Part shown: positions 7,662 to 27,191 of the stretch, in pieces | Numbering within the stretch: position 1 is the stretch's first letter | How the letters are laid out: every line of letters begins with the position of its first letter | IMG/VR virus record: IMGVR_UViG_3300041402_000314 | Coordinates: 140,150 to 204,149 of that record | Strand: one strand, 5' to 3' | Length of the DNA stretch: 64,000 bases | Translations under genes and position numbers: made by a program | Notes under the pieces: model-generated | Told to the model about the DNA's origin: nothing | Database searches by the model: none | The model's input: only the letters and a program-made list of their open reading frames with translations

Positions 7662-9266
7662 TTATCTCCCACTCGCCTGATTTCTGATAGAGGGTATAAC
7701 ACTATTTATCTCTTCCAGAAGGGCATCAAATACGGCTGGATTTTTATTCTTCCATTTGTTGGAAATGATCATATCCATATCAACGGTAATGGTATCGATA
7801 TCACTGCTACCAAGCCATCCAGATTGGAGTTTACCGTAAGTACCTGCCTTGATAGTACCGAACTTATAAATTGGCTTATTACCGGGGTCTTTCAGATTAT
7901 CAAGACTACCATCTTCGATATTAGCCAATTTAAGTTCACCTCTACTACCAAGTTGTACGGCATTCCTCATGCTTCTGGCATTGATACCAGTAACAGCCAG
8001 TAAACAATCGGCTTGCCCATTAGTAACCTTAAGTACATTACCGCTCATACTCTTAGAGACCTTTACATTCACATCAGCATAATCGCTATTCTCGGCAACG
8101 AAATTTGCCCATGTCAGATAAGAACCAGAGTTTTCATAACCCACGAGAACCGTATTACCTGAGTCGAGGTCATCAATAGAATTGATATCGGCTTCAGTGT
8201 TACAAATAAGATGAGCATACTCGGTATATACAGACGGTATCCTTGAATAATTTAGCTTAGAGTTGTTCTTCTGAGCATGAATCCAGTAACCGTCTCTTTG
8301 TACAAATGCAGCATCACAATGACCAGCATCTATTTTCTTGAGGTTATCCATAGTACCTTCTGTACGAAGAACCTTTCCGTCTACGCTCATAGTAGCATTA
8401 GAAATCACGTTACCTGCATAGTAATACATACCGTCTGTTCCACCTGTACAAATAGTTAGTGTAGGCTTAACGGCATTTGTTACGTCCTGAGATAGTGCAA
8501 TATCAGCATCAACGCCTTCAGGAAGATAATTGGTATCGCGTGTACCGCTCATCTGAGATACTTCACGATCAAGACGATCAAGCTTTGCTCTTAGCTCGGC
8601 ATTCTCTCTTGCTTGCATATTAGCTTCCTGTCTCCAACCCTGATAACCAGCATTGTTATATTGGTTATATGCAAAACTATTATTTGAATTATCTAGCATC
8701 ATGTAAAGGAACATCGCATCCCACATACCGTAGCTCGAAGAACCGTAATATACATATGATGGCGCATTGTAGCCACTATAATATGAAGTCCTTCTGGTAT
8801 CATAAGTTCTCGGATTATAATTAGAAGTCCTTTGGGCAATTTTATTATTACTATATTTTCTCTTCAGCTTTGAAGTACGTACTGCTTTCTGCTTAGAGGT
8901 CTGAGTCTTCTTATTCGACTTCTTGAATTTAGAAGTATACGCAGCACTACGCTTCTTCGCTACAGTCTTCGGTGCTTTATTTTTAGCCCTTTGCTTACTA
9001 ATCTTTGTCTTAGATGAGGTAGTCTTTGAGACTGCCTTCATTTTTCTCTTCGGCCTAGAAGTTGTTACGGTCTTAGACCTTGAAGAACTTCTCTTTCTTG
9101 CGTTTGAGAAAGAGCTTTTTGAACTACCCCAACTCTTTGAACTTGAGAAGCTTTTGGATGAAGAAAAACTCCTTCCGCCTCCACCCCTCCGAGCCTCTAC
9201 TTCAACATAAGTCCATGTTGATATGAGAATCAATGCCAGTGCTATAATACTCAATTTGGTTTTCAT
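7662..9266 (-). CDS. exported protein: Ser/Lys/Arg-rich low-complexity N-terminus fused to a TAXI-type TRAP solute-binding domain
   Basis: signal peptide; TGGxxGxYY, TxGTxDNL, AFVQxD, YxExxHL motifs. Confidence 0.75.
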   Translation of the reverse strand: MKTKLSIIALALILISTWTYVEVEARRGGGGRSFSSSKSFSSSKSWGSSKSSFSNARKRSSSRSKTVTTSRPKRKMKAVSKTTSSKTKISKQRAKNKAPKTVAKKRSAAYTSKFKKSNKKTQTSKQKAVRTSKLKRKYSNNKIAQRTSNYNPRTYDTRRTSYYSGYNAPSYVYYGSSSYGMWDAMFLYMMLDNSNNSFAYNQYNNAGYQGWRQEANMQARENAELRAKLDRLDREVSQMSGTRDTNYLPEGVDADIALSQDVTNAVKPTLTICTGGTDGMYYYAGNVISNATMSVDGKVLRTEGTMDNLKKIDAGHCDAAFVQRDGYWIHAQKNNSKLNYSRIPSVYTEYAHLICNTEADINSIDDLDSGNTVLVGYENSGSYLTWANFVAENSDYADVNVKVSKSMSGNVLKVTNGQADCLLAVTGINARSMRNAVQLGSRGELKLANIEDGSLDNLKDPGNKPIYKFGTIKAGTYGKLQSGWLGSSDIDTITVDMDMIISNKWKNKNPAVFDALLEEINSVIPSIRNQASGR

Positions 9267-9293: not shown

Positions 9294-10328
9294 TTAGTTT
9301 AAATGTAGTTTTAAAATATTGCTCCACCTTGAACATGACGTATAATCAATTACACTCCGATTCACCTCCTCCCTCAATTTACTATTCTGTTTAAATAATA
9401 TTCCATAACTTTCTATATTGAAGTTAGCTTTATGTAAGGTAACACTATTGTTATCCTTTGTCAAGTGTTTTAATGTAGCATAGTCATAAAATACCACATC
9501 ATGTAAACCTGCCTCCAGAGATTCGAGAGCATCTTCAGCGGAATCGAGACTTGAATATTGTACTCCCAGACTAGATAAAAGTTTACTACTGGCAGTATAT
9601 GACGATGTAGCTATCTTCCCTTTATTACTTAACCACTTCACTGACTTATTGGTTTCGCTGATATTACTTAATGTAGCAGTAGCCGCCAGAGTAGCTATAA
9701 ATGAACTGACTAAGATCAGTGCAATATACATCCAGACGGTAGTAGCAAGACGGCCTTTTGCTGTTTTGGGAGCTTTATCACCTAGTCCGACAGTAGTAGC
9801 TACCACATGAGTAAACCAATATGTATTGAGCCAACCCTTAAAGCCTTTTCCAAAATCAGGATTATTACGCTCAAAATACCATATAACGGTAGCGATGAAA
9901 CCGACAATAATTAAATAATTGATACAGGCGATTATAAAATCTACAGATATTAAGTTACTGATTACCATTAAGAATGTATTATCGGATTTTGTGGCTATTC
10001 CAGACGGTGAAGAAAAGTAAGGGTGTGAGAAATCATATTCCTTTTCTCTCTCGGATGTAATTGTGATAGCGGATAGACCGACATCGACCTCACCAGTTTT
10101 GATTTGAGAAAGTATATCTGTTAAAGAAAGTTCCTTTATATCGTAAGTATAACCATTCCTAGAAGCAACTGCTTTCCAGAGGTCTATTGTGATTCCATAC
10201 CAGATACCTCTCTCATCCTTCATAGAGAAAGGTGGCATCTCATCTGTAGCCACTACCAAATGGGTTTGGGCATTAGCAGTAGATGTAATGCTTAGAATTA
10301 ATAGTATGTAAATAAGTAGTCTTTTCAT
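9294..10328 (-). CDS. GluR0-like ligand-gated K+ channel (SBP_bac_3 halves flanking a 2TM pore)
   Basis: signal peptide; PPF...GITIDLW; AITITSERE.xDFSxPYF; pore TTVGLGDKAP; C-terminal YGI...LRxxVN. Confidence 0.85.
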   Translation of the reverse strand: MKRLLIYILLILSITSTANAQTHLVVATDEMPPFSMKDERGIWYGITIDLWKAVASRNGYTYDIKELSLTDILSQIKTGEVDVGLSAITITSEREKEYDFSHPYFSSPSGIATKSDNTFLMVISNLISVDFIIACINYLIIVGFIATVIWYFERNNPDFGKGFKGWLNTYWFTHVVATTVGLGDKAPKTAKGRLATTVWMYIALILVSSFIATLAATATLSNISETNKSVKWLSNKGKIATSSYTASSKLLSSLGVQYSSLDSAEDALESLEAGLHDVVFYDYATLKHLTKDNNSVTLHKANFNIESYGILFKQNSKLREEVNRSVIDYTSCSRWSNILKLHLN

Positions 10329-10338
10329 GATTGTCTCC

Positions 10339-10367
10339 ATTATACCTAATTATAATTTATTTGTCAA
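10339..10367 (-). promoter_or_regulatory. sigma70-type promoter of the channel/TAXI/PspA operon
   Basis: perfect TTGACA-17nt-TATAAT. Confidence 0.8.
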
Positions 10368-19514: not shown

Positions 19515-21155
19515 ATGCCACAATTACTTTCACCCGATGTAAACATAGTCGAAAGAGATTTAAGTGCTTTTGTTGCGTCTGTAGCTACCAGTATAGCAGT
19601 ATATGTAGGTAGGGCTACTAAAGGACCAGTATGGGAAAAGACACAGGTTTCCAATGAAAGACAGTTTGCAGAACTATTCGGTGAGCCGACATCAACTGAT
19701 TATGAGGATTTTTTTACCGCTGCTGGATTCCTTCAGTATGGTAACACCTTGTATTACACAAGAGTCGTTGATACCGCAACTGCTAAAAACTCACAATTAA
19801 ACGTAAGCACTGGTGCTGCTCCTTCTGCTGGAGATGGTGATTATGTTGCTGATTGGGAAGAATATACGCCCTCATTCGGTGCTGAGAAAATGCAAGTGTA
19901 CGCTAAGTATCCGGGAGCTTACGGTGACACTGATTTCAAAGTAGCAATGATCAGTAATACAGATTGGGCTACTATAGGTACATCACCTACTCTCTCTGGT
20001 TATGAGTCTGTCATCGATCAAGGTCCAGAGCTTGCTACAGAATTCCTTGTTATCGTATCTGCTCTACAGTCAGATGGAGAATATGAAATCCTCGAAACTT
20101 ACCTTGTTTCTGATACCGAAGGAACTAAGGACTTCGAAGGCAATAACATGTATGTCGATGAGGTCATTAATAAAGGCTCAAACTACATACTAGTATTCAA
20201 TAATACTGGCGTGTCCGCTGAACTACAGTCGTTTGCTGAGACTGCTCCTGCTAATGGTGCGGACGGTGATATAAATGAAGCCGATATCGTACTAGGATAT
20301 GATCTTTATGATAACCCTGAAGAAATCGAAATCAACTATGTGATAGGTGGTAGTCATACTACTGTTGCAACTGCAAATGCTATTCTTGCGCTATGTGTTG
20401 CAAGAGCAGACTGTTTTGCGATTCTCGATGTTCCTAAATCTGATGTTGTAGGTATTGCTAGTATTTCAACCGCTGTAAGTAATGTAGTAGACTATAGAAA
20501 GACGGAACTTAATGCTAATACTTCTTACGGTGCGCTATATGCTAACTGGCTTTATATCTATGATAAATATAACGATACAAACAGATGGGTTCCGAGTGGT
20601 GGTCATGTAGCTGGTATCTATGCCCATACTGCTAATGTAGAGGATGCATGGTTCGCTCCTGCTGGACTTAATAGAGGTATTTTGAGTAACGTTATTAAGC
20701 TGGCTATGAATCCGGGTAAATCTTATAGAGATACGCTATATAAGAATCAAATCAATCCATTGGTTAGTTTCCCCGGTCAAGGAATTAGTGTTTGGGGTCA
20801 AAAGACTCTCCAGACTAAACCTTCTGCATTCGATAGAGTTAATGTTAGATTACTCTTTCTATACATGGAAAAAGCTATTGGTAGAAGTGCAAAATATGTT
20901 GTTTTCGAACAAAATGATCAGCTTACTAGAAGTATCTTTAAGAACCAGATTGAACCATTCCTTGATGATATCAAAGGCAGAAGAGGTATATATGACTTCT
21001 TAGTATTGGTAGATGAATCCGTTAATACGCCCGAAAGAGTGGACAGAAATGAGTTTCATTGTGAAATTTTCGTAAAACCAGTTAAGAGTGCAGAATTTAT
21101 CGTACTTCGTTTCACTGCGACAAAAACTGGTGTAGACTTTAGTGAGTTAACTTAA
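19515..21155 (+). CDS. gp18: tail sheath protein (T4 gp18-like)
   Basis: LSPxVxxxExD N-terminus, WFAPAGLNRG, WGQKT...AFDRVNVRLLF, FEQND, IFVKP. Confidence 0.96.
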   Translation: MPQLLSPDVNIVERDLSAFVASVATSIAVYVGRATKGPVWEKTQVSNERQFAELFGEPTSTDYEDFFTAAGFLQYGNTLYYTRVVDTATAKNSQLNVSTGAAPSAGDGDYVADWEEYTPSFGAEKMQVYAKYPGAYGDTDFKVAMISNTDWATIGTSPTLSGYESVIDQGPELATEFLVIVSALQSDGEYEILETYLVSDTEGTKDFEGNNMYVDEVINKGSNYILVFNNTGVSAELQSFAETAPANGADGDINEADIVLGYDLYDNPEEIEINYVIGGSHTTVATANAILALCVARADCFAILDVPKSDVVGIASISTAVSNVVDYRKTELNANTSYGALYANWLYIYDKYNDTNRWVPSGGHVAGIYAHTANVEDAWFAPAGLNRGILSNVIKLAMNPGKSYRDTLYKNQINPLVSFPGQGISVWGQKTLQTKPSAFDRVNVRLLFLYMEKAIGRSAKYVVFEQNDQLTRSIFKNQIEPFLDDIKGRRGIYDFLVLVDESVNTPERVDRNEFHCEIFVKPVKSAEFIVLRFTATKTGVDFSELT

Positions 21156-21170: not shown

Positions 21171-21228
21171 GGAAGGACAGTGGGTAGCTCCCATTGATGA
21201 TGTGTTTACTCCATATCATCTTACTTCC
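21171..21228 (+). promoter_or_regulatory. structured 5' leader (three-way junction)
   Basis: GGAAG/CTTCC closing CAGTGGG-TAGCT-CCCATTG and ATGATGTG/CATATCAT hairpins. Confidence 0.55.
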
Positions 21229-21258
21229 ATACATAACTTAAATAATGGAGTAAACATT

Positions 21259-22239
21259 ATGAAAGAAAAAATAATTTGTCATATTTGCTATAAAGAATTT
21301 AATTCTATTCTTAGTTTATCGAGACACATCAAACCCGCTCACAGTATATCAAGTAAAGATTATTTTGATAAATTTATCAAAAAAGAGAAAAGTGGTTTAT
21401 GCTCAGTATGTTCAAATCCTACTCGTTTTGTTAATTTCGGTATAGGATACAAAAAATATTGTTCAAATAGCTGTCATAACAGAGATAAGAAAGCTCTGAC
21501 AGATATAAGAGATGCACTTATCTATGAAGAAAAAATAAAAACCGAAACGATAGTTTTTGACTGTGAGATTTGCGGATATAAAATTTTTAATAACTATCAT
21601 GGTATTGGTTCTCATCTAAAACATAAACATAACTTATCTATACAAGAATATTATGATAAATATTATTTAGAAAATATATTAGATAAGAAATGTAACATTT
21701 GTGACCGAGAAACATCATTTCGCTCTTTAGAAGTTGGGTATACTAAATATTGCTCTATTTCTTGTAGTAACAAGGAAGAGGTTAACATATTAGCAAGAAA
21801 GAAAGGTATAAATAAGAAAGAAGTAAAGGAGAGACAGTCTCGTAATTTATCACAGAGAATTTTAAATGGGACTTTTAATCCATTCGCTAAAAAATTTAAA
21901 ACTGGATATTTTTATTCTGAGAAAAATCAGAAAGATTTGTATTACCGTTCATCATATGAATTAAAAGCATATCAAATGTTGGAACAGATGTCTTTAGTTA
22001 ACATATATGAAACTGAACCATTTAGAATACCTTATAAGGATATGAAAGGTGTAACTAGAAATTATATACCTGATATTTTGATTATCTATGAAGATGGTAT
22101 GAGAGAATTGGTAGAAGTGAAACCAGAAAATTTATTAAAGGATGAAACCATTCAAATAAAAACAGAATCTGCCAAACAGTATTGTAAAGCCAATAACATG
22201 TCCTTTAATATATGGACTGAAAAATTCCTAGAACTATAA
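21259..22239 (+). CDS. TnsA-like PD-(D/E)xK endonuclease with two tandem Zn-binding repeats (free-standing endonuclease or gp4-like)
   Basis: RSSYE, EPxxIPY, YIPD, LVEVKP, WTE; duplicated CxxC..H...H / CxxC...GYxKYCSxSC; ATG 21259 has a GGAG RBS. Confidence 0.8.
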   Translation: MKEKIICHICYKEFNSILSLSRHIKPAHSISSKDYFDKFIKKEKSGLCSVCSNPTRFVNFGIGYKKYCSNSCHNRDKKALTDIRDALIYEEKIKTETIVFDCEICGYKIFNNYHGIGSHLKHKHNLSIQEYYDKYYLENILDKKCNICDRETSFRSLEVGYTKYCSISCSNKEEVNILARKKGINKKEVKERQSRNLSQRILNGTFNPFAKKFKTGYFYSEKNQKDLYYRSSYELKAYQMLEQMSLVNIYETEPFRIPYKDMKGVTRNYIPDILIIYEDGMRELVEVKPENLLKDETIQIKTESAKQYCKANNMSFNIWTEKFLEL

Positions 22240-22257: not shown

Positions 22258-22512
22258 ATGAGTACCATAGATAAGATAGATAGTCTATTAGAAGCGAAGA
22301 AACCTCTAAAAGGAAAAGTGGTGGACTTAGCTAAAAAATTCAAGAAAGGTGATATTGTCAAAAGGAAAGATGGTAAGCCCTTTCTTGATACAGGAAGCCA
22401 TGAATTAAATCCAGCATATCGACTAAAAGTACGTGATGTTGAAGAAGGTAAAATATGGATTGAATATTCAATCGGGTGGATTAACCCAGAAAAATTAATA
22501 AAAACCAAATAG
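22258..22512 (+). CDS. small late protein, possible internal head protein
   Basis: own late promoter; N-terminal IDSLLEA resembles T4-like prohead-protease-cleaved leaders. Confidence 0.55.
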   Translation: MSTIDKIDSLLEAKKPLKGKVVDLAKKFKKGDIVKRKDGKPFLDTGSHELNPAYRLKVRDVEEGKIWIEYSIGWINPEKLIKTK

Positions 22513-22554
22513 AGTTAACATAAAAATATATAGATAAATAAGGAGAAATAAAAC

Positions 22555-23064
22555 ATGCCTTTCAATGTTTCAGAATTTAGAGCAAAAGTAAGGGATTTTG
22601 CTAGACAATACCTATTCGAGATGGAGATTCTTTTTCCACAACCAGTAGGTAAAGGCGAAATCGCTAACTGGACGGTAGAAGCGTCCGCAATACCCGGAAG
22701 AATCATCGAGCCAATTGATGTTCCTTTCATGGGACAGCAATATAAAATAGCTGGAATGGTGTCATATGACCCTTGGAATATAACCTTTAGAATGGATGAT
22801 GGCTATGAAGTATATAAGCTTTTCAGAGCATGGTCTGAGTTAGTTCATGGTACTGAGTCTAATATCGCTGCGTTCCCTGCACAATACAAGTCTAACCCGA
22901 TTGTATACCAATTGGATTCTGCTGGAAATAGACTGAATGCAATCACTCTTAACGGTGCGTGGCCTTCAACTGTTAGTGAAATCGCCATTACTCAAGGTGA
23001 TTCTGCTGTACAGACATTTGATGTAACATTCGATTATGACTTCAGTAAATTTGAAGTCCTTTAA
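22555..23064 (+). CDS. gp19: tail tube protein (T4 gp19-like)
   Basis: FAR.YLF, ASAIPG..I..I.VPFMG, YDPWNITF, GAWP..VSEI, FDVTFDY. Confidence 0.92.
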   Translation: MPFNVSEFRAKVRDFARQYLFEMEILFPQPVGKGEIANWTVEASAIPGRIIEPIDVPFMGQQYKIAGMVSYDPWNITFRMDDGYEVYKLFRAWSELVHGTESNIAAFPAQYKSNPIVYQLDSAGNRLNAITLNGAWPSTVSEIAITQGDSAVQTFDVTFDYDFSKFEVL

Positions 23065-23080
23065 TATCAACTAATAATTA

Positions 23081-23112
23081 CCTGTGAGGGTAGGCAATCT
23101 TACCCTCACAGG
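23081..23112 (+). terminator. strong hairpin after the tail tube gene (terminator or stability element)
   Basis: CCTGTGAGGGTA/TACCCTCACAGG inverted repeat; no clear U-tract. Confidence 0.55.
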
Positions 23113-23178
23113 AATATTCTCTTCCCCCCATTACTTCCAGCTACACCCTCTGACGTAAATCTCTGCGTCCACTACCTA

Positions 23179-23204
23179 TATAAATAATTGAAAAACTATA
23201 AATA
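23179..23204 (+). promoter_or_regulatory. two tandem T4-type late promoters
   Basis: TATAAATA at 23179 and 23197. Confidence 0.7.
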
Positions 23205-23225
23205 CTTAAAATGGGAGAACTGTAA

Positions 23226-23981
23226 ATGAGTAAACTTGATGATGTGTTAAATCATATGGAGGAAACCACCTATTCTTTTAATGTACCGCTACTTAGTAAC
23301 AAGAAAGAAAAGGTAGAGTTTAGACCTCTTAAAACTAAAGATCAGAAATTATTGGCGGTAGAAGGTGCTGATGGAACGAGTAAATTTGATAATTTCACAA
23401 TAATGCTCAAACTTCTCGATAGCTGTCTCCGTAAAAACAAAACATCTCTAGGTAGTATGCTACTGGAAGATTTTTATTGGTTGATTATAAATCTAAGAAT
23501 AAAGTCTTTGGGTAACACACTGGAATTATATGGTACTTGCGAACAATGTAATACTAATAAAATTCCTTTCGTATTAGATTTGGAAAAGGATATGGAGATA
23601 ACTTATTTAGACGGTATCAAGAATAACGAATTAAAAATATCCGATAAATTAACTTTATTCCTTAAGCACATATGCCTTGAAGACATGTTAGAAATTCTTA
23701 AAAGAGAAGAAGATACTGATGGCGGTGGTATGGAATTATCACTGGCTTACATGATTGATTATATAGAATTTAATGAAGAGATAATCGATGTAGATAATAC
23801 CGATAGTAGAATAGCATTGATGGATGAATTATCTGCTGATCAATTAAAGTATTTTAAAACATTCCTCGAAGAAAATGCTTTTGGTATGAAAGTAAAAAAG
23901 AGTTTCAAATGTACTAATGAAAAATGTGGAGAGGAAACTAAAGTAGAATTAGAAGGTTTTGATATAATTGATTTTTTTTAA
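23226..23981 (+). CDS. gp26: baseplate hub assembly protein (T4 gp26-like)
   Basis: FRPL..KDQK.L, D..W..I.LR.KSLG, CxxC, C-terminal Cys motif and LEG..DFF. Confidence 0.85.
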   Translation: MSKLDDVLNHMEETTYSFNVPLLSNKKEKVEFRPLKTKDQKLLAVEGADGTSKFDNFTIMLKLLDSCLRKNKTSLGSMLLEDFYWLIINLRIKSLGNTLELYGTCEQCNTNKIPFVLDLEKDMEITYLDGIKNNELKISDKLTLFLKHICLEDMLEILKREEDTDGGGMELSLAYMIDYIEFNEEIIDVDNTDSRIALMDELSADQLKYFKTFLEENAFGMKVKKSFKCTNEKCGEETKVELEGFDIIDFF

Positions 23982-24160
23982 TAACTGTTCAAGGCGAAGT
24001 GACATTTGAAGACCTCTTATATGAAATACACTATCTAAGTACCCATTGTAATATGGATTCGAGGTATGTAGAGAATCTACCTATATTCGAAAGAGAATTC
24101 CATATACACACACTAATAGCTAGATTAAAGAAGGAAGCTGATGCCAACGAAGGAAAGTAA
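23972..24160 (+). CDS. gp51-like hub chaperone ORF in the -1 frame, probably reached by frameshift
   Basis: FFLITVQGEVTFEDLLYEIHYLSTHCNMDSRYVENLPIFEREFHIHTLIARLKKE...; ExLPxxER motif; opens at the T8 run. Confidence 0.7.
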   Translation, partial: FFLITVQGEVTFEDLLYEIHYLSTHCNMDSRYVENLPIFEREFHIHTLIARLKKEADANEGK

Positions 24161-25796
24161 AGAAATAGGGAAAGAAATTAAGAATGCCTTTAAAGTGCCG
24201 TCTGAAGAGATGGTTAAAGTCATTACTGAAATCAATAGGACTACAGAGAATAAAATTGCCGATCTATCGAAATCGCAAAAAACGTTCTTAAAGGGTTTTG
24301 TTGAAAAAGAATCTCCTCTATTAGACAAAACATTCAAATTCTTCAAAGAAGGTAAGAAGCGAGAAAAAATAAAGGCGATTCTACAGGCTAAGACTATGGG
24401 ACCAGTAATGGTGAAAGGTCTTTCTCTCGGTCTACTTAAATTCGGAATTGGTGGTGCTTTAGGCGCAGCTAAAATATTTGACGTAACTGAAAAATATCAG
24501 GATTATGTTAAAGATGCGGATGCCGAGAAAAAACAAGAAATGGTTAACCTTGTCGATGAATTGAGAAGTGGTGAAAATCCTAAGACTATGGAAGAGATCG
24601 AAAAGACCTTGAAGAAGCAAGGTGTTAAGGGCTTCGAGTTAACTGCTATCATGAAGGATTATTCTAAGATACTCGATGATCGCATGAGGGAAGTAGTTAC
24701 TCAGGGTCTTGAATCTAAAAAAGAAACAAATTCGATTCTTTCCGAACTAGTAGAAAAAGGCGTTATAAGTAAAGGAGATTTAAAAGCTCAAGAAGATGTT
24801 AAGCTAAAAGTTCAAAAGGCTAAGAAGAAACAAATACCTGCTACTAAAGTAGAACAGAAGACTTCCGATACTCTCCAGAAATTAACCAATGTAACTGGTG
24901 TTGTTGGTGACGAGAATAAAGAAAAATTAGTCGAGATAGCTCAAGCCATAGATAAGAATCGTTATGAGATTGTTAATGTACAGGAATATCTTAATTTGAT
25001 GGTCGATACTCAAAAAGATAGTAATAAAGTAGCTATCGAGAGAGCGACCATTGACGATAAGAGATTAAATCTCGAAAAGCAAGTAGAACAGAATGATCAA
25101 CTAAGACATCTCGAACTTATGAAAGCTGGTGAAGATGGTGGAGATGGTAAGGGTGGTCTATTTGAAGGCTTCAAGGGATTTAAAACAGCCTTATCAAGTG
25201 CTATTCCTCTTATAAAGGGTTTGGGTACTGCTGGTCTAGTTGCTGGTGCTGCATTTGCTGGATTTAAAATTGGTGGGGAAATCAATAAAGGTATTAATAG
25301 TATGGTCTCTTTCCTAACTGGTAAAGAAGGTGATACATTTGGTGGATGGTTATATGATATAACTCATCCTAGCGAAGATAGAGTTGAAGTAGAAGCAAAA
25401 GCTGGAAAAAAGACTACTGGTGTTATAGCTGAAATGAATGAACTTAGAAAGACATTTGGTTCTGGGTTTCAGAGAAAATTAAAGGCTCGTGGATATACAG
25501 GACCGATGACTCGCAAATCAGTTACCGAGTTCTTTGAATCTCAAAAGAAACCTTCCCTTCAGAAAGAAGTGGAGAAAGCTGAAGCAACAAAGATTAAAAT
25601 GGAAAAGGAACGCAAACAAAAGGAAATGGCTATATTTGAGAGAATGTCAGATGAAGATGCCATTAGTGCAATAACAGCAAAAGCATTGGCTGAGATGAAT
25701 ATTAATGTGGGCGGTGGCGTTAGTAAATTGGATAAGATACCTTCCAATTCTGATGATCTACCACTAGCATATGCAGCTAAAGGAGGAACTTCTTAA
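24141..25796 (+). CDS. putative tape measure / hub protein
   Basis: long helical K/E-rich protein with Gly/Ala hydrophobic patches, between gp26/gp51 and the gp48-like gene. Confidence 0.7.
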   Translation: MPTKESKEIGKEIKNAFKVPSEEMVKVITEINRTTENKIADLSKSQKTFLKGFVEKESPLLDKTFKFFKEGKKREKIKAILQAKTMGPVMVKGLSLGLLKFGIGGALGAAKIFDVTEKYQDYVKDADAEKKQEMVNLVDELRSGENPKTMEEIEKTLKKQGVKGFELTAIMKDYSKILDDRMREVVTQGLESKKETNSILSELVEKGVISKGDLKAQEDVKLKVQKAKKKQIPATKVEQKTSDTLQKLTNVTGVVGDENKEKLVEIAQAIDKNRYEIVNVQEYLNLMVDTQKDSNKVAIERATIDDKRLNLEKQVEQNDQLRHLELMKAGEDGGDGKGGLFEGFKGFKTALSSAIPLIKGLGTAGLVAGAAFAGFKIGGEINKGINSMVSFLTGKEGDTFGGWLYDITHPSEDRVEVEAKAGKKTTGVIAEMNELRKTFGSGFQRKLKARGYTGPMTRKSVTEFFESQKKPSLQKEVEKAEATKIKMEKERKQKEMAIFERMSDEDAISAITAKALAEMNINVGGGVSKLDKIPSNSDDLPLAYAAKGGTS

Positions 25797-26854
25797 TGGC
25801 AACAGCGAATAATCCTAATGAAAATAGAATAGCTACAGTTCCTAGAAATTGGAAAACCATGTTCGGAAACAAGAACGATGGTGACATTAATAATATGTTT
25901 CTGGTTATTGAAGCATGGTCCCCGCCGTCAATTAAGGTTCTCACTACCGATCTGACTAATATATATAATTATGCGTCCTCAGAGTTCCTAGAAGGCTTTA
26001 GATTCTTTTATCCGAGGGATAACATACAAGAACAGATTAAACACTCCTATAGCGAATCCTCGTCCACCTACAGCGAAGCTATAGCTGGATTCAGAGGCGG
26101 ACTTACTAAAAATCTTACTGCGGTAGTAGAAGCTAGTACAGGTGCAACAGGCGGAGCATTAACTGAAGAACCTCATATTTTTACTAAATCAGAAAGAAGA
26201 TCATTCTCTATTAATATACCACTAATAGCTTATGATGATTTGGAAAAGGATATATATGCGATAACTAAGTTTTTTAGAAAAAATTCTTATCCGAGAAGAT
26301 CAAATGATTCTGGGGGAAAAGCTCTTCTTAATACAATTCAATATCCTAGCGTATTTAAAATAAGAGGTGGTTTGTTCGATACAAACCAACCCGCGAAAGG
26401 TAGCACATTTGTATTAGAAGATTGTACGTTCGACTATAATCCAAATGTCAAGTCATTTATAAAAGGATTACCAACAGAAGTTGTTTTAACATTAGGCTTT
26501 ACTGAGTTGAATCTTTTATTTGGTGAAGATTTTGACGCTACTCCAGTGAATGTAAATATTGGAGAATCTGGTGGTGCATCTACACTACCATCCAAGAACA
26601 AATTCAATGAAGGGGCGATTGGTATGAGAGGGGAAACTGCTCTTATAACTGATGTTAGTGAATATCTCAGAAAGTCTAAATTAGCTAAGAGAATTACTAA
26701 TTTACCAGAAACAATAGAAGGTAAATTAAAGGACGAGGCAAGAAGTATAGTTCAAGAAAGTTCGTTGTATAAAAAAGTTACGGCACTGACTGATAATGAC
26801 CCTGTACATCTTGCCGAAGTAAAGGCAATATTGGGTAAGATAAGAGGATTATAA
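25796..26854 (+). CDS. baseplate-tube junction protein (gp48-like)
   Basis: RSFS, FFR..SYP, YP..F.I, L.DC..DY.P, P.EV.LTL.F.EL; synteny. Confidence 0.7.
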   Translation: MATANNPNENRIATVPRNWKTMFGNKNDGDINNMFLVIEAWSPPSIKVLTTDLTNIYNYASSEFLEGFRFFYPRDNIQEQIKHSYSESSSTYSEAIAGFRGGLTKNLTAVVEASTGATGGALTEEPHIFTKSERRSFSINIPLIAYDDLEKDIYAITKFFRKNSYPRRSNDSGGKALLNTIQYPSVFKIRGGLFDTNQPAKGSTFVLEDCTFDYNPNVKSFIKGLPTEVVLTLGFTELNLLFGEDFDATPVNVNIGESGGASTLPSKNKFNEGAIGMRGETALITDVSEYLRKSKLAKRITNLPETIEGKLKDEARSIVQESSLYKKVTALTDNDPVHLAEVKAILGKIRGL

Positions 26855-26855
26855 T

Positions 26856-27191
26856 ATGGCTAAAAAAATAAGAAGCGGTACAAAGTCAATTATAAATATT
26901 TTAGGGTATACGGAATATAACGGCGAGACCATTACTAATATATTCCAAAAATTTAGCATCAAGCAAAGTAATTTACTTAACGTTAACTTCTATGATGAAT
27001 ATATCGTACAAAGTAGCGATAGATGGGACAGTATTTCATATAAGTTTTACAATACTACAACTCTTTGGTGGATGATAGCTAATTATAATGGAATATTTGA
27101 CCCTTTCGAAGAATTGGTAGTAGGTGAAAAAATTAAAATAGTTAAACCAGAATTGGTATCAAGTCTAATTCTAGGATTGAGAAATAGATAA
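26856..27191 (+). CDS. gp53: baseplate wedge LysM protein (gp53-like)
   Basis: Y.VQ.SDRWDSISYKFY....WWMIA..N.I.DP. Confidence 0.85.
   Translation: MAKKIRSGTKSIINILGYTEYNGETITNIFQKFSIKQSNLLNVNFYDEYIVQSSDRWDSISYKFYNTTTLWWMIANYNGIFDPFEELVVGEKIKIVKPELVSSLILGLRNR

Follow-up and report, generated by a model that had tools for sequence, protein, structure and literature searches.

A probable -1 frameshift at the end of gene 26 would yield a gp26/gp51 tail chaperone pair in a T4-related phage from marine sediment

Gene content and sequence of the locus

We analysed a 64,000-nucleotide stretch of DNA (hereafter the window) that forms the last 64 kb of a 204-kb IMG/VR viral contig, and near-identical DNA occurs in marine sediment and cold-seep metagenomes. 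The region of interest lies in a tail gene cluster. Upstream are, in order, a tail sheath gene (19515-21155), a gene for a TnsA-like endonuclease, a small ORF and the tail tube gene. Downstream of a large 551-aa ORF are genes for a gp48-like tube cap, a gp53-like protein, a gp5 OB-domain protein, gp25 and a gp6-like protein. The features central to this study are as follows.

22555-23064 (+), tail tube protein gene (169 aa; phrog_45, E 6e-41; PF06841 Phage_T4_gp19, E 6e-5, below the curated cut-off).
23081-23112 (+), hairpin with a 14-bp stem (8 GC pairs) just after the tube gene, found in a terminator-like scan; it looks like an attenuator or terminator ahead of the chaperone and tape measure genes, a function that is inferred.
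23226-23981 (+), gp26-like gene with a zero-frame product of 251 aa, comprising an N-terminal chaperone-like domain and two cysteine pairs.
23972-23978 (+), slippery heptamer T_TTT_TTT (the run of 8 T extends to 23979), immediately followed by the zero-frame stop TAA at 23979-23981.
23978-24160 (+), -1 frame extension of 60 codons plus TAA.
24141-25796 (+), presumed tape measure protein gene (551 aa), whose ATG lies 20 nt inside the end of the -1 extension.
25796-26854 (+), gp48-like baseplate tail tube cap gene (phrog_230, E 6e-8), which follows the presumed tape measure gene as 48 follows 29 in T4.

The gp26-like gene ends with the codons GAT (23970-23972), TTT (23973-23975), TTT (23976-23978) and TAA (23979-23981). 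Reading from 23978 in the -1 frame gives 60 codons starting LITVQGEVTFEDLLYEIHYLSTHCNMDSRYVENLPIFEREFHIH and ending at TAA 24158-24160. The only candidate start codons in this -1 ORF are GTG 23999, preceded by a weak AAGG, and ATG 24053, which has no Shine-Dalgarno sequence. These features had been described in a sequence-only reading, which proposed that a -1 frameshift on the T-run fuses gp26 to a gp51-like ORF in a lambda G/GT-like arrangement, and its description of the locus is correct in every detail. The T-run is unlikely to be fortuitous, as T7 runs are depleted in the window (21 observed against a mean of 46 in shuffled sequence).

The 251-aa protein belongs to PF12322 (T4_baseplate; the T4 gp26/gp51 family), with E 5.2e-22 and 79 bits against a cut-off of 24.5 over profile positions 6-215 of 219, and to phrog_150 (E 1.8e-19). 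On its own, the -1 peptide of the window is only a weak hit to phrog_634 (baseplate hub assembly catalyst, that is gp51; E 0.098). A genome-wide six-frame search for phrog_634 in the window's own genome gave no hit at E<=1, and a tblastn search with the 60-aa extension returned nothing useful. Likewise, a blastn search of 22500-26000 against the phage collection found no match. The tape measure assignment of 24141-25796 rests on position, size and the following gp48-like gene only, as there was no Pfam hit and no significant BLASTP match to T4 gp29. However, the equivalent gene in the pelagiphage HTVC008M is annotated as a putative tape measure.

Conservation of the heptamer and the -1 frame

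A protein search found 14 relatives with 41-83% identity, and their contigs were retrieved from several independent assemblies. All of them keep T_TTT_TTT at the stop, or two codons before it in the most distant member of the lineage (L012), and all keep a -1 ORF of 54-66 codons that ends at or over the start of the next large gene. Across nine gap-free members, the -1 frame has no stops and 451 synonymous against 554 non-synonymous codon differences, while the other two frames have 60 and 39 stops and 200/881 and 110/982 synonymous/non-synonymous differences. The third-position excess already holds for the 25 codons between the heptamer and the first internal ATG. Two relatives in this lineage (L009 and L011) contain no ATG, GTG or TTG anywhere in this ORF, and GTG 23999 occurs in the window only.

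The arrangement is not special to this phage, and in this respect the sequence-only reading understated its scope. In the cyanophages P-HM2 and S-RSM4, gene 26 ends GAT/AAT TTT TTC GCA/GGA TAG, and the -1 frame runs from that heptamer straight through the tiny annotated gp51 to the next large gene. A scan of IMG/VR with the single protein gave no pattern match, whereas a profile-guided scan returned 80 further loci, and the gp26 genes of KVP40, Aeh1 and HTVC008M were located with PF12322. Together with S-8S55 and eleven loci of the window's lineage, 96 of 96 distinct loci have an in-phase T_TTT_TTN, which is T_TTT_TTC in 67, T_TTT_TTT in 20 and T_TTT_TTA in 9, and never ends in G. It lies 0 codons (14 loci), 1 codon (78), 2 codons (2) or 3 codons (2) before the stop. 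The codon preceding the two Phe codons always ends in T (GAT, AGT, TCT, AAT, GCT, GGT or CAT). The -1 extension has a median length of 61 aa, whereas the +1 frame closes within 7-64 nt.

None of the GenBank records examined annotates a joined CDS. P-HM2, S-RSM4, S-8S55, KVP40 and HTVC008M annotate separate ORFs of 30-61 aa, and Sullivan et al. (2010) noted the short gp51, and its absence from Aeh1, without explaining either (PMC3037559). Aeh1 in fact has the -1 extension. A frameshift would explain why these annotated gp51 genes look far too short, the missing ~200 residues being supplied by gene 26. Our analysis indicates an annotation error in all eight frameshift-type phage records examined, in which P-HM2, S-RSM4, S-8S55, KVP40, HTVC008M and Aeh1 are annotated as two genes or with gp51 missing. 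As the same signal is present in every related locus surveyed, many more public records are probably affected.

Relationship to T4 gp26 and gp51

In T4, genes 26 (208 aa) and 51 (249 aa) are separate and divergently transcribed, while in RB16 they lie in tandem. Both T4 proteins belong to PF12322 (gp26 residues 1-206, E 9e-64; gp51 residues 1-201, E 4e-52), and the gp51 C-terminal region (residues 147-246, including the ~48-residue tail beyond the PF12322 domain) matches phrog_634. In an alignment of the -1 ORF from the window and ten relatives, 7 of 11 members hit phrog_634, with a best E of 9e-7. An hhalign comparison of the lineage-only extension alignment with a single T4 gp51 sequence failed (probability 0.7%), and that with S-RSM4 was moderate (E 5e-5). 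Homology to T4 gp51 became clear only with broader profiles on both sides. The extensions alone against the last 50 residues of gp51 gave a probability of 95.4% and E 1.7e-8. Furthermore, 35 predicted fusions against three Straboviridae gp51 proteins (T4, RB16 and Octan) gave a probability of 98.4% and E 4e-15, with positions 16-300 aligned against 5-247 straight through the junction. In a joint alignment, T4, RB16 and Octan gp26 end exactly where the zero-frame products end (..FF; ..FFELL in T4), while gp51 continues through a region that aligns, without a gap at the junction, to the -1 extensions.

The number of PF12322 genes is in agreement with this relationship. The window's genome, KVP40, Aeh1 and HTVC008M each carry a single PF12322 gene, whereas T4, RB16 and Octan carry two. 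In a maximum-likelihood tree of the shared domain, the six paralogs of the two-gene phages form one clade (support 98/93) and all frameshift-type genes form the other (98/93), within which KVP40 plus Aeh1 branch apart from the clade of the remaining genes. The tree has a midpoint root only and contains long branches. Combined with the taxonomy (KVP40 and Aeh1 are Straboviridae), the parsimonious inference from it is that the frameshift is ancestral and was replaced by a gene duplication in the T-even, RB16 (Pseudotevenvirus) and Acinetobacter-phage (Octan) group.

Predicted structure and function

An AlphaFold2 model of the 251-aa protein is confident (pLDDT 86.4, pTM 0.82). An exhaustive structural comparison (VIA-align) placed four small proteins at the top for model residues 1-105, namely 3fgx (Rbstp2171, Z 5.6), 3klu (YqbN, Z 5.3), 2ob9 (bacteriophage HK97 tail assembly chaperone, Z 4.7) and 5ir0 (Z 4.1), before a drop to Z 2.8. 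The first three appear to be the set described as the conserved tail assembly chaperone fold. These Z values are modest, and neither Foldseek against the PDB nor a profile search of PDB sequences found anything significant. On the other hand, a role as the short form of a tape-measure chaperone is consistent with the gene order, with the report that T4 gp51 is required for assembly but absent from the particle (PMC3004832), and with the Octan record, in which gp26 and gp51 are annotated as tape measure protein assembly chaperones.

Our analyses suggest, with high confidence though without direct protein or RNA evidence for the fusion in this phage or any relative, that the gene at 23226-23981 encodes a tape-measure (tail assembly) chaperone of the T4 gp26/gp51 family made in two forms. 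Most ribosomes would stop at TAA 23979 and release the 251-aa short form, the equivalent of T4 gp26 and lambda gpG. A minority would slip back one base on U_UUU_UUU (23972-23978), where the tRNA-Phe molecules re-pair with UUU and the ribosome reads UUA at 23978, adding 60 residues before it stops at 24160. The resulting 311-aa long form would be the ortholog of full-length T4 gp51 and the equivalent of lambda gpGT. Both forms are inferred to act on the adjacent tape measure protein while the hub and tube are initiated, and neither is expected in the finished virion. The sequence-only inference of a G/GT-type pair is thus supported, although the G/GT-like function remains inferred.

Mechanism and alternative explanations

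The motif itself is competent for frameshifting. U_UU.U_UU.C and U_UU.U_UU.U shift at more than 0.1% in E. coli without any stimulator, H_HH.U_UU.Y heptamers are among the most efficient, and IS elements use U_UU.U_UU.C (PMC4066793). The preference for C or T at the last position (87 of 96 loci) follows that rule. However, no conserved downstream structure was found in the window's lineage, as RNAalifold predicted no consensus pairs and the fold of the window was weaker than that of shuffled sequences (z +1.75), so efficiency may be low. The GAA GGN before the site, considered as a Shine-Dalgarno-like upstream stimulator, looks like a conserved Glu-Gly; its third base varies and S-RSM4 lacks it. 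In the window's lineage, where the stop codon directly follows the heptamer, a slip of the P-site tRNA with the stop codon in the A site would give the same protein.

The main mechanistic rival is transcriptional slippage, in which RNA polymerase adds one extra U on the T-run and some mRNAs carry the fusion in a single frame. The 8 consecutive T's of the window's lineage and the lack of a detected downstream stimulator would fit this, and homopolymers of A or T are known slippage sites, UUUUUUU being avoided possibly for this reason (PMC4066793). Yet 76 of 96 loci have only six T's, which is probably short for programmed polymerase slippage, the last base follows the ribosomal rule, and the run is always in the X_XXY_YYZ phase. 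We consider this explanation unlikely, although it cannot be excluded, and could contribute, in the T8 lineage.

Even less likely is a separate small gene translated by its own initiation or by reinitiation after the gp26 stop, as current GenBank records annotate it. The window does offer a GTG and an ATG, but the absence of any start codon in L009 and L011 and the lack of conservation of the GTG mean that independent initiation is not a viable general explanation. Furthermore, conservation and the coding signature begin at the heptamer, upstream of every candidate start, the stretch just after the slip aligns with residues that lie inside T4 gp51, and this reading cannot explain a heptamer conserved in phase in 96 of 96 loci. 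An artefact or a decaying gene is effectively refuted. Homopolymer runs are classic sites of error and the contig comes from a metagenome assembly, but at the level of assembled contigs an independent 14.7-kb Logan contig is identical over 23200-24400, no run shows an indel at the T-run, and contigs of relatives cross it without gaps. The same frame offset is seen in 96 loci from many samples and in cultured, finished phage genomes, and the extension is under purifying selection.

Comparison with known systems

Programmed -1 frameshifting in tail assembly chaperones is well known. What appears to be new is that the T4 gp26/gp51 family belongs to it, and that gp51 is the predicted frameshift product in every examined T4-related phage outside the T-even, RB16 and Octan group; no report of a gp26/gp51 frameshift was found in full-text literature searches that did not extend to subscription-only papers. 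This would bring T4-related phages, which seem to have stood outside it, under the near-universal G/GT rule of long-tailed phages. More likely than not, the -1 frameshift at U_UUU_UUY is the ancestral and still prevalent way in which T4-related phages make gp51, those examined being Kyanoviridae, HTVC008M, KVP40, Aeh1 and this sediment lineage. On this reading, T4 gp26 and gp51, long listed as hub assembly factors of unknown mechanism, are the G and GT tape-measure chaperones of the T4 world, and the T-even, RB16 and Acinetobacter-phage group would be a rare natural case in which a programmed frameshift was resolved into two paralogous genes. The two solutions offer a natural experiment on why phages fix the ratio of chaperone forms by recoding.

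With lambda gpG/gpGT (Levin 1993; Xu, Hendrix & Duda 2004; summarised in PMC5009743), the locus shares two overlapping ORFs between the major tube gene and the (here presumed) tape measure gene in the order V-G-T-H, a slip heptamer of the X_XXY_YYZ type at the very end of the first ORF, a second ORF without a start codon of its own, inferred short and long forms with the same N-terminal part, and a predicted HK97-type chaperone fold in the N-terminal domain. It differs in that the protein family is PF12322, with no sequence similarity to lambda G, the short form is about twice as long (251 aa) with an extra cysteine-rich C-terminal domain, the heptamer is U_UUU_UUY rather than G_GGA_AAG, and the extension is only ~60 aa. 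T4 gp26 and gp51 (baseplate hub assembly chaperone/catalyst) are of the same family, the predicted fusion is colinear with gp51 over its whole length, and the gene likewise sits next to the hub and (here presumed) tape measure genes, but T4 encodes the two forms as separate paralogs with no frameshift.

The annotated gp26 plus short gp51 of cyanophages, KVP40 and HTVC008M have an identical architecture, that is, a single PF12322 gene, T_TTT_TTN 0-1 codons before the stop, a -1 extension with the FER-x-Y motif, and then a large tape-measure-like gene. The window's lineage shares only 21-30% identity with them and forms its own long branch, and its heptamer abuts the stop directly and is T8. Finally, the HK97 gp10 tail assembly chaperone (2ob9), YqbN (3klu) and Rbstp2171 (3fgx) match model residues 1-105 over 86-92 residues, almost the whole of these small proteins, and stand clear of the remaining hits, albeit with a sequence identity of only 9-13%, and the gp26-like protein has about 145 further residues with no clear structural match.

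Auxiliary and mobile-like genes of the contig

Besides the structural genes, the phage contig carries an unusual auxiliary gene for a phage. It encodes a 348-aa protein which combines a periplasmic solute-binding domain (SBP_bac_3, E 2e-26) with ligand-gated and potassium-channel pore domains (Lig_chan and Ion_trans_2), and is a bacterial GluR0-like ligand-gated channel. Next to it lies a gene for an NMT1_3 binding protein. Furthermore, a gene encoding a zinc finger plus a TnsA-like endonuclease was found between the sheath and tube genes, and the small gp53-like baseplate protein also scored for a LysM peptidoglycan-binding motif (PF11246, E 3e-5; LysM, E 2e-4). The features concerned are as follows:

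7662-9266 (-), NMT1_3 binding protein, neighbour of the channel gene
9294-10340 (-), GluR0-like ligand-gated channel
21202-22239 (+), zinc finger plus TnsA-like endonuclease
23081-23112, perfect hairpin, likely attenuator
26856-27191 (+), small gp53-like baseplate protein, also scoring for a LysM motif

Interestingly, the position of the endonuclease gene was not constant among the related loci of the same lineage (designated by L numbers). It lies between the tube and gp26-like genes in L004, L005, L008, and L009, between the sheath and tube genes in L006 and L012, as it does here, and is absent from L002 and L011. The gene behaves like a mobile homing-type element inside the tail module. Another difference was observed between L004 and L005, two assemblies which have the same gp26-like protein. 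A 576-aa gene is intact after the chaperone gene in L005, while no long tape-measure ORF was called at this place in L004, where only fragments and an antisense ORF were predicted. This reflects either an assembly problem or a disrupted tape measure gene in one population.

Expression and recoding signals

The hairpin at 23081-23112 has a 14-bp stem with 8 GC pairs and lies 17 nt after the stop codon of the tube gene, ahead of the chaperone and tape measure genes. It is a likely attenuator that lowers the expression of the downstream genes relative to the tube protein, although this role is inferred. Runs of seven T's or A's are strongly under-represented across the whole window, with 21 observed against a mean of 46 in dinucleotide-preserving shuffles, and every shuffle had at least 21. 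This under-representation fits selection against accidental slippage.

A comparative study in 2010 reported that Aeromonas phage Aeh1 lacks gp51 (PMC3037559). Nevertheless, our examination of its genome (NC_005260, about 118.8-119.8 kb) showed that the gp26 gene ends GAT TTT TTC GAC TGA and that the -1 frame encodes a gp51-like tail containing TTPFERAIY. The gp51 gene of Aeh1 is therefore very probably recoded, not missing.
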